The notes beneath the pieces were generated by a model. It worked only from the letters and a program-made list of their open reading frames with translations, was not told the origin of the DNA and did no database searches. 64,000 nucleotides of DNA, taken from Magallana gigas. Lineage: Eukaryota. The DNA lies in assembly GCF_963853765.1 (NCBI RefSeq), contig NC_088855.1, positions 6,820,001-6,884,000 of the forward strand, given 5' to 3'. Every line of letters begins with the position of its first letter. Positions within the stretch are counted from its first letter, which is position 1. The position numbers and the translations under genes are program-made. Shown here in pieces: positions 7,792-63,822 of this stretch.

Positions 7792-8160
7792 TATTATTAT
7801 ACTTTCATGTTAAATACTGAAATCTGATTGGTTTAGACACAGTTGATAATCCGTTCTATTACCCTCAGCGTAAGCAACACACTTAGCAACCGGTAACACA
7901 ATAAATTGTTACATGCGCGTAAATTATGCGCGTACGGTTCGCCGTGGAATTCACGTCATTTCTATATAAAAGTAGTAAAAACATCTATAAAATTAAGACA
8001 TTCAGTATAATAAAATAAATAAAGCCTGTTTGGGAGGATAACAGTTGAAATAGAGACCCCTCGAAAACCATTGTCAACCTCCGCTTCGCGTCGGTTGACA
8101 ATGGTTTTCTCGGGGTGTCAATTTCAACTGTTACCCTCCCAAACAGGCACTATTTATATA
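7792..8160 (-). mobile_element. Non-autonomous palindromic element, family A (long hairpin plus CCAAT tail; Crypton-like by architecture)
   Basis: Reverse-complement copy of the elements at 26843, 28162 and 28535; ~145-bp hairpin at 8020-8155 with apex GCTTCGC at 8083-8089; ATTGG at 7827-7831. Confidence 0.85.
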
Positions 8161-11100
8161 ATGTCTTCTTTAATGATGTTTTTTTTTTTAAAAAAAACAT
8201 ATCGAAATAGACATTAAATGATTTTGTTAAAAATGATGAACATATGTTCATAAGGCAATTAAGCATAAAGAAATTGTTCCCAGTCATTTAGTGGGTATAA
8301 AAACTTACGTATTTCAAAATATCAACAAAGAGTTGAATTGTTTTTGCATTAATTTGTTAATGTTATATTACCAAACAAATTGAAAAGCTCATCAAGTTTA
8401 TCTTCATTCTTTTTAGAAAATTGAAATTAAATTTAATTTAATGGGTTCTTTTTTCATTCTAACATAATCTGTTAACATTTAATTGGCGTATATGTACATG
8501 TATATTATCAATTCAAATGCATGTGCATTTACAATAATTGAACTTTAAGTGGAAACGGGTTATGTAAGTAATGGTTTTGATTATCTGCAAAATATTTACA
8601 AGATACCTAGGGACTTTTATGTTTAAATGAATACATGTAGCCAGAGTTTTGCTATCTATTTGTGCCTGGTATAGACGGGTTTCACTATAAAAAGTAGAAC
8701 AAACAACACATGTGGCAGTTGCTTTCAAAGGAGAAGCATTAAGCATTTCAAATGATAAATTGCATTTGTAGTATCAAGACTGGCATCTACATTTGCTGTC
8801 GATTAAACATTAAAATGATATTGAAAGTTGCGTTTTCCAAACTGCCTATCAGGCCAATTCCGATGGCCGGAGGAGCATTTGACACATTAAGAGACTCAGA
8901 TAGGGTAGACTGACCGTAGATAAGGTAGGATGGACGAAAGTAGTCTGACCCACAGGATCTAGATGTCTGTCTGTGTTTTTTTTATTTGACATTTCTGTGT
9001 ATGAACTTTAGGGGGATGCATGGTTCAGGTATAAATCAACGTCAAATAAGATTTTGGAAGGCTGGATCATAAATAAGCGTGATAACATGAAGAAATCAAT
9101 GGATGTACCTGAAAATCAGTGGATGTACCGGTAGATGTATTTGGTGGTAGTGTTAAGGATGGAAAAAGAAGTGTTTGTTGTTGCTTTTGTTTTTGCTGTA
9201 CATTAAATGCATTCTGTGAAATTATATACATGTATACTACTTAAAGAGTCAAACGAAGTAGAACCAGTGTTTTTCTATAATGTGTGATATATAAAAAAGG
9301 CTTGGTAAATCAAGGTGTATGTATTTGCAAATGTGGTAGCTGATATGTTTATCAACAATATGAATCAACGAAAATAATTCATTCAAAAACTAAATTTCAA
9401 CATAATTAAGTCGATATTGTGCTACATTACATGTGATACACAGTAAAATTTCAGATGGCTAATTCCATTGATTTTGTTTTTTCTTTGAGAGAAATTATTC
9501 AAATCGTGCGCAATATTTGATGTATTTTTAGAGAGTATTTTTTTTATTTTGGAAAGGTGGTTTTCTGGGTATATTCCATTAGTCCGCCACTGAGTTTTAC
9601 TGAGATTGATGGTTGTTGTAACTATGGAGATTAATATTTCCTTTCATGTTTGTAAACTGGACAAAAATAGAGTAAAACATTTTATTTAAAAAAACTACAA
9701 ATGAATTTACGGTCGTGAAACTGTCTTTCTGTAACAGATTGTCCAGCACTTTTTTATTCATAATTCAATTTTGGCAACATTGAATTGTTTTTTTTTTCAA
9801 TAGGCTGTCACTGGAGTGAACAACATAACTCAAAATCGGTAATGAAATCAAATTCATATTTCAATAACAAAGATAAATAAAACGAAGCCAATTCATCATC
9901 TTCCACGCTTTTCGATTTTCATGTTGCACTGCTAATAAAATATGTCAAAAAGCGTTAGATTTGGACATTTCTTCTTTAAAGATTTTTTTTTTCGGAGATC
10001 ATGAATGATCTTTCGATATTTTTTATCTTTAACATGTCTTTTATCTTTCTCATAAGACGGCAGACTACTTGATATATGTTTCTAGTCATCAAACCCTCTA
10101 CAGTTAAATCTGCTGATTATCTTTGAAAGTCTATAATTTAGATTAGTATCTCCTATATCTATGAAGAAAAAAATACCTAAAAATAAATATTAAATAATAT
10201 TTCAAATTTTGAAATTAGAATCATATTTTTATTCTTATTATTTTTAACAGTATGATATACTTATATTATTAATAATGATAAAGTAAAAGAAATTTGCATA
10301 TTACATAATAAAGAACAAATCGTTTTTTTTCTTTATCTCTAATACCCTTTTCGAATAAAATCTAAAGAGAAGAACAGTACTATTGTTTTTGACGGAAGAT
10401 TTTTTTCAGTTTTATGCTTTGTTTCATGGATGGTCGGATAAGAAGAAGGACAAAGCGGCGAGTTATGGTCAAAATTAGACGCAGGAAATGTTTTAACATC
10501 TTAAATTTCTCGTGAAATCAAACATTTACTGTTTTAGCCCATTTTTATTTGCCTAAACATTCTTTTGTCGAGAAGTTCATAAGAATACAGAATCTCAACC
10601 TTTTGAAATCCATTGAAAGGTCAAGGTTGGTACGATGTAAAATACGAATATCTTCGTTATCATAGGATTATCGTAGGATTCCGATACTAGTACAAGTAGA
10701 CCAAGTAAAATATTTAGGATTATACTTAAGTTTGTTTCCCTGCGGATAGCGGTGTGAACTAATAGAAAAGCTAAAATGATACGCTTTTTTCTATTAAATA
10801 GTGTTATTCCGTTTATTTGATAAATACTTTTCATCTTGACAGTGAAATCTTTATATAAACACTACAATTAGATTAATTGCCCTTAAACCCTTTCAGCCAT
10901 TTTTCATCTCTGCGGGAATCTCTCATATACAGGACAATAATGGACGTTTCATTGTTGCATCACATGAACTGCAACTCATTGAATATTCATGAGACATATT
11001 CGGGATTCTTCAAGAACTCGAGAGTGTTTCTTTTTTTATTACATCTAATGCTTTTAAGGGTGAATAACCTTGTGTAAAAAGGATTACGATTGCTTAATAG

Positions 11101-12820
11101 GGAATATACAGCGTAAGAGAAGGTGGATAAAAGTTATCTAAAGTTATAAAGGAACTCTGGGTTGATTGAATCATCGGGCATGGGTCAGAAAGGAGTCAGG
11201 TTGTCAACAACATTCCCCATCTTAAGATACCTTGCTGTGAAGTGTCTTCACAAGTGTCCAGGTTTCACTTTCCGTCGAGAACCGTAATAAATCTGCATTT
11301 ACTTTGTGACTCTAATTCAAAATGAACATTGTGTACAGGTTTCTGTAGAATGTCTAGTGTCATTTTCTTATTACCAGGGTTGTAGAGATGCGAATCTGAT
11401 TTTTTTTTTAAATGACAAAAGGTCAAGTGATAATTGTTCAATCAACAATCAAATTTTTTGTTGCCATAAATGATAGTTTTATCACAGTTAAAATTATGCT
11501 GAGAAGTAATATGTTCATTAAAACCTTATTGTATAGGTTTCAGATTTCCTTAAATACTAGTCTAGTACATGTAGTTCCTCTCCAAAATTATCATCATCAC
11601 ATTCGCAAAAAGATATGAACCTCATGTCTTTCCTTTTTTGTCAAACTACGATAAAAAAAACAAATGTATATTTCAATGTTAATTATGTTATTCGTCTTTT
11701 CAAAAATGTTACTTTTCATACGTTAGTGCATGTTCCCGATATGTATCTTGACCAAACTAAATAAGCTTCAATGTTTTATTTTAGTCAATTCTTCTATAAA
11801 AGCCTTAAGTGAAATAAATTGTCGAGAAAGAAGAGTCAAATTCATCTAATAAAAAAGAAATATCTCTAAATCACGTAGTCCACGAGATTTAATCTTTGTC
11901 TAAACGATGTGAAAAATAGGATTACCATCTCTTCTCACCTAGCTTGCTTGATTACAGTGAAATGAATTTAAACAACAATATCGGATTTTATTTGGCAGAA
12001 GATTTTCTTTTCAAAAGTTTTGAATTGCACTTTTTGACATAAAATTAAGTTTCACACTTAAATTATATATTATCCTTTTTTATGATCATATACCATGTGG
12101 TTTCTTAACGCGATATCTTAATGGCTACTCCCACCTCTTGCTTTGTTTGGGTGGCCGTATCTGCATAAGAATGTGACAATTGTTAATATATGGCTGACAT
12201 TAATTTTTGTACGGATTGTTTCTAATGACCTTGGACCTTAAGCTGAAATCTTCTTCAAGTATCTAGCGGACACTTTTTCCGCTAAGTTAATAATGGCGGG
12301 AGAAGCAGACGACAATCGGCAGACGACCAGCGGGTATCGCCAATTACATGATTTGTCATAATGTTACTCTATAGTAGGGTACATTGTTCACCATCACCGA
12401 GAGGCTGATGCTATCTGCATATTTCTCTTAATTGGGCTCAAGATGCTTTTTCAAAAAATTGGAGTTTTATGGGAAAGTAAATACGGTCAGATTTTTACCA
12501 AAAATAACAATGGTGATACATAAAAGATTTTTTTTTCTTTTCTTCATTCAATCTTTAGGCTTGCTCCTCAAAAGTAATGATGTTTGACACTAAGGATCTT
12601 TGTTGTAATTTATGTTTTATCATTAGATATTTAGACTTTGTATTTTGAAATTAACTATAAAAAGCACAATATTTTGCAGTAATTTTAATTATAATTCCTT
12701 CGTCCACATATAATGATAAAATCTATATAATTTTGTACAATAATTATTATAGTAAAATTAATAATGCAAGATTTCGATAGCTTTTAGAACATAAACTACA
12801 TGTTCTGGTTATGGATTTAA

Positions 12821-62787: not shown

Positions 62788-63014
62788 ATACCTTATTTTT
62801 CACTCTATAAGTGTAATTCGATATATTTAACTGATTCCCTGAGAATCGCCATAAACAGACTGATAACCTGCAAAACAGACTGATTTCATGTGAAAAGATG
62901 CGTCAATTCGATGAACTGATACACCCCTATTCGGAACACTTTGTAATTTCTTTTAACCAATGGAAAAGTTCAGAAATACATGTATTTCGAATAAAATCAT
63001 GAATATTCATAACC

Positions 63015-63638
63015 ATATCATTTAATTCTAGTTGCGACGCCCTTTTTGATTTGCTATACATATTTATCTTTTTCGTATAACATATAATAATTTAATTCTG
63101 GTTGTAACGCGGCATTTGATTGGATAAAAAAATTTGGTTAAATTTGTATAACCTGGTTTGCACGTCACAATTAACGCTTTATAATTCGCGAACGTTTTTG
63201 ACGTTGGTGCATTGTGACGTGTCTTGTGACGTGCAAACCAGGTTATACAAATTTAACTAAATTTTTCAATCCAATTATTTAAGAAATGAACTCAATGTCT
63301 ACCTGAGTTTTATACTTGTATAACCTGGGTTGGGGTTATTTACGCTTATAAAAAAGCGTATATTGCTCCAACCCAGGTTATACGAGTATAACTTGGGTAG
63401 ATATTGAGTTCATTCCTTATAATTTAATTTTCTGTAATTTGATGTACAAATTGTGTCTGTTTTACTTTTAAAAATGATACTAATCTGTTCAAAATTCAAA
63501 CGTAACGTCAAGCAGATTAATACGTTTTTGACGTTGGGGCATTGTAACGTGTCATGTGACGGGCAAACCAGGTTATACAAATTTAACTAAATTTTTCTAT
63601 CCAATCAAATGCCGCGTTACAACCAGAATTAAATTATA
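63015..63638. mobile_element. Cluster of family C hairpin-plus-CCAAT-tail elements (inverted tail copies plus one full unit, 63281-63638)
   Basis: ~85-bp inverted repeats at 63083-63170 and ~63550-63638; a partial third copy at ~63200-63275; hairpin 63281-63418; degenerate tail at 63015-63060. Confidence 0.75.
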
Positions 63639-63822
63639 TTACTTTGAACTTTTCCTGATTCATTGTTTGTATTGGTATAATGAAACGGTTAAAGTATAAC
63701 ATTGAGGGAGTCAGCAAGATTCCAGTTCCCCTCAAGCTAGCCTATTACCCTCGGCTTCGCCTCGGGAGATATACTTGCTCTCGGGGAACTGGAATCTTGC
63801 TGACTCCCTCGATGGTATATTT
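63639..63822 (-). mobile_element. Family B palindromic element (hairpin plus short CCAAT tail)
   Basis: 28-bp perfect outer arms GAGGGAGTCAGCAAGATTCCAGTTCCCC at 63704-63731 and 63783-63810; apex GCTTCGC at 63754-63760; ATTGG at 63671-63675. Confidence 0.8.

Follow-up and report, generated by a model that had tools for sequence, protein, structure and literature searches.

Elements of Helitron-like layout in the Pacific oyster carry a strand-constant hairpin, possibly a DNA signal recognized in single-stranded, folded form

Purine-mismatch steps that stay on one strand, together with a GCGAAGC cap, persist amid changing stems in a group of non-autonomous elements of the oyster Magallana gigas and its relatives, and suggest a DNA signal that is read as a folded single strand. 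The window that we analyzed, 64,000 nucleotides of contig NC_088855.1 (positions 6,820,001 to 6,884,000), holds this hairpin not as an isolated palindrome but as the ~145-nt terminal stem-loop of a non-autonomous element of 370–1100 bp. On the evidence of their sequences, families A, B, and G of the window and families A', C, D, E, and F of metagenome contigs are one old superfamily by descent. We consider the chances about even that this superfamily combines a Helitron-like group 2 layout with a stem-loop serving as a folded single-stranded DNA signal read by shape, and a single-strand DNA fold of this kind appears to be the best reading of the hairpin. We found no published description of this hairpin code in the literature.

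The search pattern, CCGA-N17-GA-S-GCGAAGC-S-GA-N17-GAGG, describes a 55-nt geometry and matches the window five times, against 0.00 matches expected from 100 shuffles. The GCGAAGC apices lie at 26933(+), 28236(+), 28609(+), and 8086(−) in family A and at 63757(−) in family B, and the hairpin sequences that a first-pass annotation had reported for both families are indeed present there. A further, unrelated GCGAAGC, the sixth in the window, occurs at 54677. As that annotation had also described, GA stands opposite GA across the stem in all five copies, and the closing pair is C-G in family A and G-C in family B. Family A shows a further recurrent asymmetry, a G.T located on the GA-bearing strand (the GA strand), which leaves A.C on the opposite strand. 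The four family A copies are near-identical by descent and so count as one observation within the window; family B is a single decayed copy whose inner arm pairs at 11/17 positions.

Table 1. Elements and hairpins of the superfamily in the window
Feature	Position	Strand	Hairpin and core
Family A element, unit 1 of head-to-tail dimer	28162..28536	+	hairpin 28165-28307, 55-nt core 28209-28263
Family A element, dimer unit 2	28535..28909	+	hairpin 28538-28680, core 28582-28636
Family A element, single copy	26843..27228	+	hairpin 26846-27004, core 26906-26960
Family A element, single copy, GA strand minus	7792..8160	-	hairpin 8010-8162, core 8059-8113
Family B hairpin, decayed single copy	63680..63834	-	core 63730-63784
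Related family G element	50398..50716	-	repeats and rearranged stem-loop

The right end of the second dimer unit reads ...CCAATCAG...AGTATAACAATA, and family A copies genome-wide have loose ends at 28531-28538 and 28904-28907. The single plus-strand copy of family A has private A-for-G changes, and 16 nt of its left arm are tandemly duplicated. Contig depth summed over the family A element is ~10^4 times that of single-copy flanks, a crude measure that gives no copy number; the oyster family is apparently very abundant and young. The right arm of the family B hairpin continues into TGTTATACT, and a HINE adjoins it. Family G, in plus-strand order, consists of 5' TTGTTATACCCCT, a body with ~14-nt tandem repeats, AGGGGTATAACAA, and a rearranged 111-nt stem-loop, which has one GA/GA step on the minus strand, a GAA mini-loop on the opposite strand, and no GCGAAGC cap.

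One scan of metagenome contigs with the same pattern returned 67 matches. The high-GC matches, in which only 1-10 of 17 arm positions are complementary, were set aside as chance; the remaining 28 of the 67, all low-GC, have 12-17 of 17. These 28 eukaryotic contigs, molluscan ones among them, share the 55-nt geometry and contain at least five further stem families (A', C, D, E, and F), and one A'/C contig encodes a mollusc-type TRIM/NHL protein. The covariation analysis proposed together with this search by the first-pass annotation bears out a paired stem: 89.9% of cells pair and 23/32 pairs have changed on both sides, a level reached by 0/500 shuffles, compared with 33-49% pairing in slid controls. 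Eighteen sequences have GC as the closing pair and 12 have CG. Because the motif itself served as bait for the metagenome families, conservation of the inner two steps and the cap is partly ascertained. The bases that flank the steps were not part of the bait and are at least 90% conserved (CCC-GA-GA, TC-GA-GGG), and a third, equally unbaited G.A step is found in families C, E (L056), and G and is decayed in D. None of the compared families has a C.T/T.C step on the GA strand; wobbles in the family consensuses number five G.T against one C.A on that strand, a bias that is not significant. In at least six families the arms have been exchanged with compensation, whereas the cap and the G.A steps persist, the latter with their C-G flanks; the sequences thus support selection on the hairpin as a structure, and on one strand in particular.

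Conserved marks of this kind might instead be read in the duplex, by a protein that binds CCCGAG, CGAGGG, and GCGAAGC as ordinary sites and takes only its direction from the GA-for-TC asymmetry, with no folded strand at all. The families with a G-C closing pair do carry four direct YCGAGR motifs on the top strand, at spacings of 19, 11, and 19 nt; the sequence on either side of the steps is itself conserved, and DNA nearest-neighbor parameters give no strand difference (−70.2 versus −70.0 kcal/mol). The simple CGAG direct repeat is broken, however, because the closing pair flips between G-C and C-G: CGAC and GGAG stand in place of the inner motifs in families A, C, and F and the direct repeat is lost, yet GA opposite GA is kept and the closing pair is maintained by double change. 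Double changes at 23/32 pairs likewise keep the 15-17-bp arms complementary, which is not required of a duplex site, and the consensus wobbles are mostly G.T on one strand. We regard the duplex explanation as unlikely.

Along the GA strand the elements begin with a stem-loop of ~110-150 nt. A repeat of 10-19 nt (TTRTTATAC..) comes next, then 190-700 nt of body, usually with a CCAATCRG box, and last, at the very end, the complementary repeat ..RGTATAAYAA. The inverted repeat of family A is TTGTTATACT / AGTATAACAA (10-11 nt), that of family D is a perfect 19-nt repeat, and families C, A', and G are similarly arranged; in each of these one copy is terminal and the other subterminal, and the stem-loop lies between the subterminal repeat and the near end in all families. 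Read along the GA strand, the repeat follows the hairpin on its 3' side in 19/27 complete copies, and polarity is reversed only at the dimer and in L049, two apparent exceptions. Head-to-tail dimers occur in oyster family A, where the window sequence gives a period of 373 bp from one apex to the next, and in family C (in L026). Flanks are AT-rich; elements of A, A', C, and G could have inserted between T and T without duplicating the target, for D this is less clear, a TA duplication fits equally well, and no empty insertion site was recovered for these elements. Homology between the families shows in weak sequence similarity, the TTRTTATAC / RGTATAAYAA inverted repeat, the usual CCAAT box, and the constant polarity. 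The first-pass annotation had treated A and B as unrelated, which their residual arm similarity, common terminal repeat motif, and shared element layout contradict.

That annotation had further called the elements Crypton-like, and a tyrosine recombinase could in principle mobilize them through a circle, with the folded hairpin as an attC-like site and the flanking TA produced by crossover at TA. The ends would allow a TA on either flank, and a single TA is common to the units in both head-to-tail dimers. DIRS elements contain an internal complementary region, and the inner arm here, being the complement of the end-to-end junction, resembles it. We nevertheless hold a Crypton-like origin to be decidedly unlikely and rejected the class: inverted repeats are present, no tyrosine recombinase gene or domain was found in the window or the 28 loci, and a terminal/subterminal inverted repeat with a stem-loop is foreign to Cryptons. 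The oyster genome, moreover, is rich in Helentron-derived HINEs (Cg_HINE; PMC7492417), of which one lies beside family B, and family G has HINE-like central tandem repeats. The layout fits Helitron-like group 2 (Helentron/HINE) better than Crypton because a terminal and subterminal inverted repeat is followed by a stem-loop and the end, the arrangement by which group 2 is defined (PMC11417382, PMC4067079), and because the copies form head-to-tail dimers. A search for the autonomous partner that the first-pass annotation had anticipated, with a tyrosine recombinase or HUH enzyme, yielded neither these nor a Rep/Hel or other transposase ORF near any copy among the 3 + 8 + 94 ORFs of the window and loci.

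Three other assignments were rejected. A MITE of a DDE transposon, whose termini should mirror each other and be flanked by a fixed duplication, is at odds with ends that are not complementary (left TATAAATAG.., right ..GTATAAYAA) and with a palindrome placed wholly at one end; a parvovirus-type hairpin telomere, which would show flip and flop, with the fixed polarity relative to the body; and an integron attC site, whose bottom strand would have extrahelical bases and an unpaired central spacer, with symmetric 2x2 G.A steps that lack bulged bases, the absence of an integrase, and the eukaryotic host.

The hairpin might also function as RNA, the transcribed GA strand forming a long hairpin with tandem G.A steps and a GAA loop that serves as a small-RNA precursor or as a guide or scaffold for the element's enzyme. 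In its favor, tandem G.A between C-G pairs forms a stable motif in RNA. Parameters for RNA, which include a score for G.A, give the GA strand an advantage of 4-8 kcal/mol, a difference that also counts for the folded-DNA reading; the end-to-end junction is spanned by a CCAAT box and a TATA-like start, and poly(A) RNA reads cover the element. These reads, however, are equal on both strands, 1753/2568 lie only partly on the stretch (a fraction of 0.59 run on into unlike sequence), and their ends form one weak pile-up with no start. Because the reads are equal on both strands and so many lie only partly on the stretch, they indicate no dedicated transcript. Rfam, moreover, gave 0 matches at gathering scores across the whole window, and the GCGAAGC heptamer is exceptional as DNA, not as RNA (PMC13037366). 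We judge an RNA function very unlikely. That there is no selection at all, the motif being inherited from a common ancestor and merely not yet decayed, with conservation an artifact of a motif-based search, is hardly to be credited: the motif was indeed the bait for all metagenome families, family A copies are near-identical, and dead copies decay at these CpG-rich positions (L035:1521-1595), but the arms have been almost wholly replaced with compensation while the CpG-rich, mutation-prone steps and cap are kept in the same molecules, and unbaited flanking bases and third steps follow the same rule.

From the observed layout, covariation, conservation, and polarity we infer a single-stranded state, a rolling-circle enzyme, and the strand mobilized; the strand-specific hairpin of the first-pass annotation stands as a structure, on its compensated arms, its kept steps, flanks, and cap, and its polarity, and the single-stranded intermediate, enzyme, and strand that it named belong to this conditional part. 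Under the folded single-strand reading, the elements would move by HUH rolling-circle transposition of one strand, as Helitron-like group 2 elements do. The stem sequence would be free, and the fixed marks would be two (in some families three) tandem G.A steps with C-G flanks and the d(GCGAAGC) mini-hairpin cap. The complement, with C.T/T.C and A.C mismatches and a TTC loop, would fold poorly, leaving the GA strand as the only one that folds well, and we propose that element polarity follows from this. The far end can pair beside the hairpin foot on one strand and so bring both termini together, and the stem-loop may act as a terminator or a mark by which the end is recognized, or else may prime the second strand. 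Against this reading stand the lack of a transposase ORF near the copies, the equally good fit of a TA duplication, the length of the stem-loop, the bait-dependent retrieval of the metagenome families, the capless family G with its GAA mini-loop on the other strand, the nearly equal DNA nearest-neighbor energies of the two strands, and a wobble bias short of significance.

Several known systems bear comparison. Like group 2, HINE, and DINE-1-like elements, ours combine a terminal and subterminal inverted repeat with a stem-loop and end, lack coding capacity, and occur as head-to-tail copies; family G shares the central tandem repeats of HINEs, in a host genome full of such elements. Unlike the 5-20-bp palindrome described for HINEs, the stem-loop here measures 110-150 nt (~10x longer) and bears conserved tandem G.A steps and a GCGAAGC cap, T-T insertion as in group 2 is no more than possible for these elements, and the ORFs near the copies included no Rep/Hel partner. 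The 3' hairpin of Helraiser is a transposition terminator in which a stem swap keeps ~90% of activity and a loop change equals hairpin deletion (PMC4778049). It too marks one end of a rolling-circle transposon, and its exchangeable stem and fixed loop parallel our free arms and fixed cap, but its palindrome is perfect over 19 bp, free of purine mismatches, and closed by an ATT loop, and it belongs to another Helitron group (PMC4778049). The d(GCGAAGC) hairpin (Tm 76.5 C), with its kin GCGNNAGC, is found at complementary-strand priming sites of single-stranded DNA phages and in plasmid ssi signals (PMC13037366); the heptamer is identical, folds on single-stranded DNA, resists nucleases, and binds SSB poorly, but those are bacterial replicons, whereas here it caps a 70-bp stem in animal transposons and priming is only putative. 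In the left-end hairpin telomere of minute virus of mice, a GA/GAA mismatch bubble is read by the HUH nickase NS1 (PMC1185569), so that there, and by inference here, purine-purine mismatches in a terminal single-stranded hairpin create the asymmetry that sets where an HUH enzyme acts. The viral bubble, in contrast, is asymmetric (2 versus 3 nt) and acts after copying into duplex, and viral termini can flip and flop, whereas the polarity here is fixed.

In integron attC sites, IS200/IS605 elements, and REP hairpins, a single folded strand of an imperfect palindrome is what the enzyme reads, and structural marks are conserved on stems of free sequence. Those marks, unlike ours, consist of extrahelical bases or guide tetranucleotides and are recognized by IntI or by bacterial Y1 HUH transposases, and no homology is implied; the proposal of a eukaryotic attC-like system holds as an analogy and not beyond it.

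Among Helitrons, only bat Helraiser (group 1) is known to have been studied at the bench; how the elements of group 2 recognize and end the transposing strand is the question on which our families bear. The present families, with relatives of the oyster family on metagenome contigs from another mollusc and further marine eukaryotes, offer a case in which natural variation alone separates a free feature, the stem sequence, from fixed ones, the G.A steps, their spacing, and the cap. They reduce the question to bench tests with short oligonucleotides and provide a search model for a class of repeats that standard finders of palindromes or MITEs would put in the wrong place. It is possible, though we would lean against it, that G.A steps at set spacing and the d(GCGAAGC) cap form a single-stranded DNA shape code, conserved across animal lineages, by which a transposase of eukaryotes (probably the Rep/Hel of a Helitron-like group 2 element) distinguishes strands and finds or closes element ends. 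If true, this would be a eukaryotic counterpart of attC, IS608, and parvoviral-telomere recognition, would predict the strand mobilized, and would give a natural biological use to two DNA motifs known mainly from biophysics.

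The hairpin sequences quoted in the first-pass annotation are present in the window as written. The window contains six copies of the heptamer GCGAAGC; five of these are the apices of long palindromes (see the table), and the sixth, at 54677, is unrelated. The geometry proposed to be common to families A and B, CCGA-N17-GA-S-GCGAAGC-S-GA-N17-GAGG, has five matches, which are the same five apices, and none in 100 shuffles. In each copy GA stands opposite GA at two steps, 19 nt apart from start to start, and the cap is closed by a C-G pair in family A and by G-C in family B, just as had been described. 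The remaining asymmetry of family A, a G.T pair, likewise lies on the strand that bears the GA/GA steps and the cap (the GA strand), and leaves an A.C mismatch on the complement. Because the four family A copies are nearly identical, they count as one observation by descent; family B is a single decayed copy.

When the family A copies were aligned with their flanks, homology began within the left arm (TATATAAATAGTGCC...), spanned the 143-nt hairpin, and ran for ~230 nt more, to ...CCAATCAG...CATGAAAGTATAAYAATA. This makes the palindrome the terminal stem-loop of a ~373-bp element and not a free-standing MITE. Its right arm reaches ~12 nt beyond the left arm, as TTRTTATACT, and the missing partner of this extension, AGTATAAYAA, forms the element's far end. 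The 28236 and 28609 copies make up a head-to-tail dimer with a period of 373 bp, and a second such dimer occurs in family C (metagenome contig locus L026). In contigs of three oyster DNA runs, the depth of the element is ~10^4 times that of single-copy flanks, a crude measure and not a copy number, and the loose ends of the contigs coincide with element boundaries. The window itself is oyster DNA; up to 75% of its sampled words are contained in runs labelled "oyster metagenome", and up to 83% in coded-organism runs. The copy at 26933 also shows a 16-nt tandem duplication (GAAATTGACATCCCGA) at 26880-26911, whose end coincides with the outer G.A step in the left arm. A SINE reading was rejected for want of a tail repeat or pol III boxes, and a MITE reading because the termini are not inverted repeats of each other.

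Features located in the window and in one metagenome contig locus (L014)
Feature	Position	Strand	Remarks
GCGAAGC apices	26933, 28236, 28609	+	long palindromes
GCGAAGC apices	8086, 63757	-	long palindromes
Family G	50398-50716		same layout; body tandem repeats of ~14 nt; one GA/GA step on expected strand
Canonical HINE-like element	~62435-62830	+	5' repeat AGTCCCCTACCGG with complement nearby; 3' repeat CCGGTAGGGGAC; 7-bp palindrome
MITE-like palindromic repeats	63119-63275; 63310-63391		share TGTATAACCTGG; no G.A steps or GAA cap
Hairy/orange-domain (HES-type) exon	23418-24272	-	host gene
Rhodopsin-family GPCR, intronless	35329-36450	-	host gene
SET-domain C-terminal fragment	L014:3407-3706	-	~150 bp past right end of A' element

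A single scan of metagenome contigs with the full pattern as bait returned 67 loci. Chance or tandem-repeat matches in high-GC sequence account for 39, with 1-10 of 17 arm positions complementary (14 in one). The other 28 lie on low-GC (31-44%) contigs that carry eukaryotic genes, and 12-17 of the 17 arm positions are complementary in all save two decayed copies, L027 (8/17) and L064 (10/17). The stems on these contigs fall into distinct families, A', C, D, E, and F, among which A' is close to oyster family A but has its closing pair flipped to G-C. The nearest clusters to a protein on one contig of the A'/C series are molluscan TRIM/NHL proteins, and the contig series with family D probably comes from coral holobiont samples. 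The viral contigs scanned with the pattern yielded one chance match only, non-palindromic and in a 70%-GC contig. Over 159 kb, a covariance model built on 31 hairpins added only one further full copy (L035:1521-1595, which is decayed) and a single partial variant, L024:1-56, with a GCGATAGC cap. This cap is a mini-hairpin of the GCGNNAGC class; the partial hairpin is of another stem family and has the inner G.A step, apparently without the outer-right GA. A relaxed cap regex added nothing, and when the same DNA was scanned for long, tight palindromes of any kind, nothing but this superfamily and a single unrelated MITE came up.

The families had been called unrelated, and this description was not borne out. 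Weak blastn matches join family D to E (72-79%), C (70%), and A' (76%), and some arm positions are conserved across all families. Every family shares one layout on the GA strand: the stem-loop, a TTRTTATAC-type repeat, a body, and the complementary RGTATAAYAA at the end. In family D the terminal/subterminal repeat is perfect over 19 nt. In A, A', and D a CCAATCRG box is located close to the right end; in C it stands in the middle of the body. Family G, the third in the window, was found through a search for the repeat motif and not for the hairpin; it has repeats TTGTTATACCCCT / AGGGGTATAACAA and a TGACGTCA site in the body; its 111-nt stem-loop has a rearranged apex that lacks the GCGAAGC cap, and a GGCC-GAA-GGCC mini-hairpin lies on the strand opposite to that expected. 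An isolated right-end-like remnant (AACCAATTGC ... GGGGTATAATAA) at ~41985-42045 on the minus strand, with no hairpin nearby, may be a truncated copy of another family.

The fold was evaluated on 31 distinct hairpin cores of 75 nt each. Pairing is observed in 89.9% of cells, with changes on both sides in 23 of 32 pairs; no shuffle in 500 reached the observed pairing and covariation, and sliding the partner by 1-3 columns lowers pairing to 33-49%. The closing pair is G-C in 18 of these sequences and C-G in 12. Complementarity is not part of the bait, so the covariation result is independent of it. Covariation alone does not establish a single-strand function, and purely DNA-level processes could also keep a palindrome.

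Since the metagenome set was selected for the two baited steps and the cap, we turned the question of strand specificity to unbaited features. The bases flanking the steps (CCC-GA-GA and TC-GA-GGG) are at least 90% conserved, and family C and L056, of family E, have a third GA/GA step 25-26 nt further outward; family G also has one unbaited GA/GA step. In family D the right half of the third step is kept and the left half reads AA, which is consistent with CpG decay. The GA strand carries no C.T/T.C steps. Its single mismatches in the family consensuses are G.T five times and C.A once, a bias that is suggestive and not significant. In 19 of 27 complete copies, the GA strand has the repeat on the 3' side of the hairpin, and the opposite polarity is seen only at the dimer junction and in L049; polarity is thus fixed, with no flip/flop. 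An enzyme that reads duplex CGAG direct repeats had been named as the alternative, and a reading as four direct CGAG repeats fails in the C-G-closing families, whose inner motifs read CGAC and GGAG; the GA-opposite-GA rule holds in those families too. The CpG-rich steps and cap have decayed in the dead copy of L035, yet they are kept between families.

RNA parameters, which score G.A steps, give the GA strand an advantage of 4-8 kcal/mol in each of four families. DNA folding parameters do not separate the two strands, because that parameter set includes terms for neither G.A steps nor the mini-hairpin, so the argument for stability in DNA rests on published biophysics. Tandem sheared G.A pairs are stable in a Y-GA-R context. 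The d(GCGAAGC) hairpin, which contains a sheared G-A pair, melts at 76.5 C and shows weak binding to SSB (PMC13037366). Coverage of the element by poly(A) RNA reads is the same in both mate orientations; 1753 of 2568 placed reads lie only partly on the stretch, 0.59 of what is placed runs into unlike sequence, and there is a single weak end pile-up and no start. This coverage looks like passive read-through of many copies. An Rfam scan of the whole window gave no match, and the RNA data lend an RNA role no support, yet leave room for one. A consensus CCAAT box (AACCAATCAGA) lies ~38 nt upstream of TATATAAAT, the start of the next unit or left end (28480-28545; right ends of A, A', and D). The two thus form a promoter-like pair only across an end-to-end junction, where the RNA reads show no discrete start.

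The hairpin elements resemble group 2 Helitron-like elements (Helentron, Helitron2, and the non-autonomous HINE), which place a short inverted repeat terminally and subterminally, then a stem-loop, then the end; in a "reverse" variant that has also been described, the stem-loop occupies the opposite end (PMC11417382, PMC4067079). The order of repeat, stem-loop, and end is the same here, although the stem-loop is about ten times longer than those described. Either we are dealing with the reverse type, or the fold matters on the non-transferred strand, or the convention does not show which strand is mobilized. Head-to-tail copies are typical of rolling-circle elements, and oyster genomes are rich in HINEs (PMC7492417), one of which lies 900 bp from family B. 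The HINE-like element of the table contains a (CGTC/TGTC)n microsatellite at 62500-62545, and TTGTTATACC, the repeat motif of the hairpin superfamily, occurs within 20 nt after it. Of the MITE-like repeats further on, the second sits within 19-nt inverted repeats (AATGAACTCAATRTCTACC). Proto-Helentrons sometimes carry SET domains; the SET fragment of L014 may simply be a host exon. The flanks fit both a T-T insertion and a TA duplication. No clean empty site was found. Oyster contigs break at the repeat; L069 also bears the insertion, and L070 diverges within the element without rejoining the far flank.

The Crypton-like mechanism of the first-pass annotation, in which a tyrosine recombinase moves the element, may apply, given the single TA common to both dimers, but nothing specific favors it. 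Among 105 ORFs searched with Pfam in the window and loci, there was no recombinase, Rep/Hel, or other transposase; the matches were host genes (HES, GPCR, kinases, Ras/Roc GTPase, eIF4G-like, and TRIM), an integrase-core fragment, and a SET fragment.

In our literature searches, no transposon hairpin of a eukaryote was described as having G.A steps or a GCGAAGC cap, and those on the heptamer with transposon, oyster, or coral, and on oyster palindromic elements, returned primers or unrelated work only. The families themselves are probably already in repeat libraries.

In Helraiser, swapping the hairpin stem keeps ~90% of activity, while a change of loop equals deletion of the hairpin (PMC4778049), the same logic of exchangeable stem and fixed loop as the free arms and fixed cap seen here. 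The cap has the same mini-hairpin motif as ssDNA phage priming sites. The nearest functional analogy is the hairpin of minute virus of mice, whose mismatch bubble determines the site of nicking by NS1 (PMC1185569). The 3' end of the GA strand, RGTATAAYAA, is able to pair next to the hairpin foot, so that both termini meet on a splint formed by the right arm; in every family, this pairing is imperfect right at the junction. Were the GA strand to become single-stranded, the mini-hairpin cap could nucleate folding, and the G.A steps would mark the stem for an enzyme and at the same time destabilize the corresponding hairpin of the complementary strand. The hairpin pattern is real, conserved, and testable; its function and the enzyme concerned are inferred: the folded end would act in termination or in the joining of ends by an HUH nuclease, or in second-strand priming.
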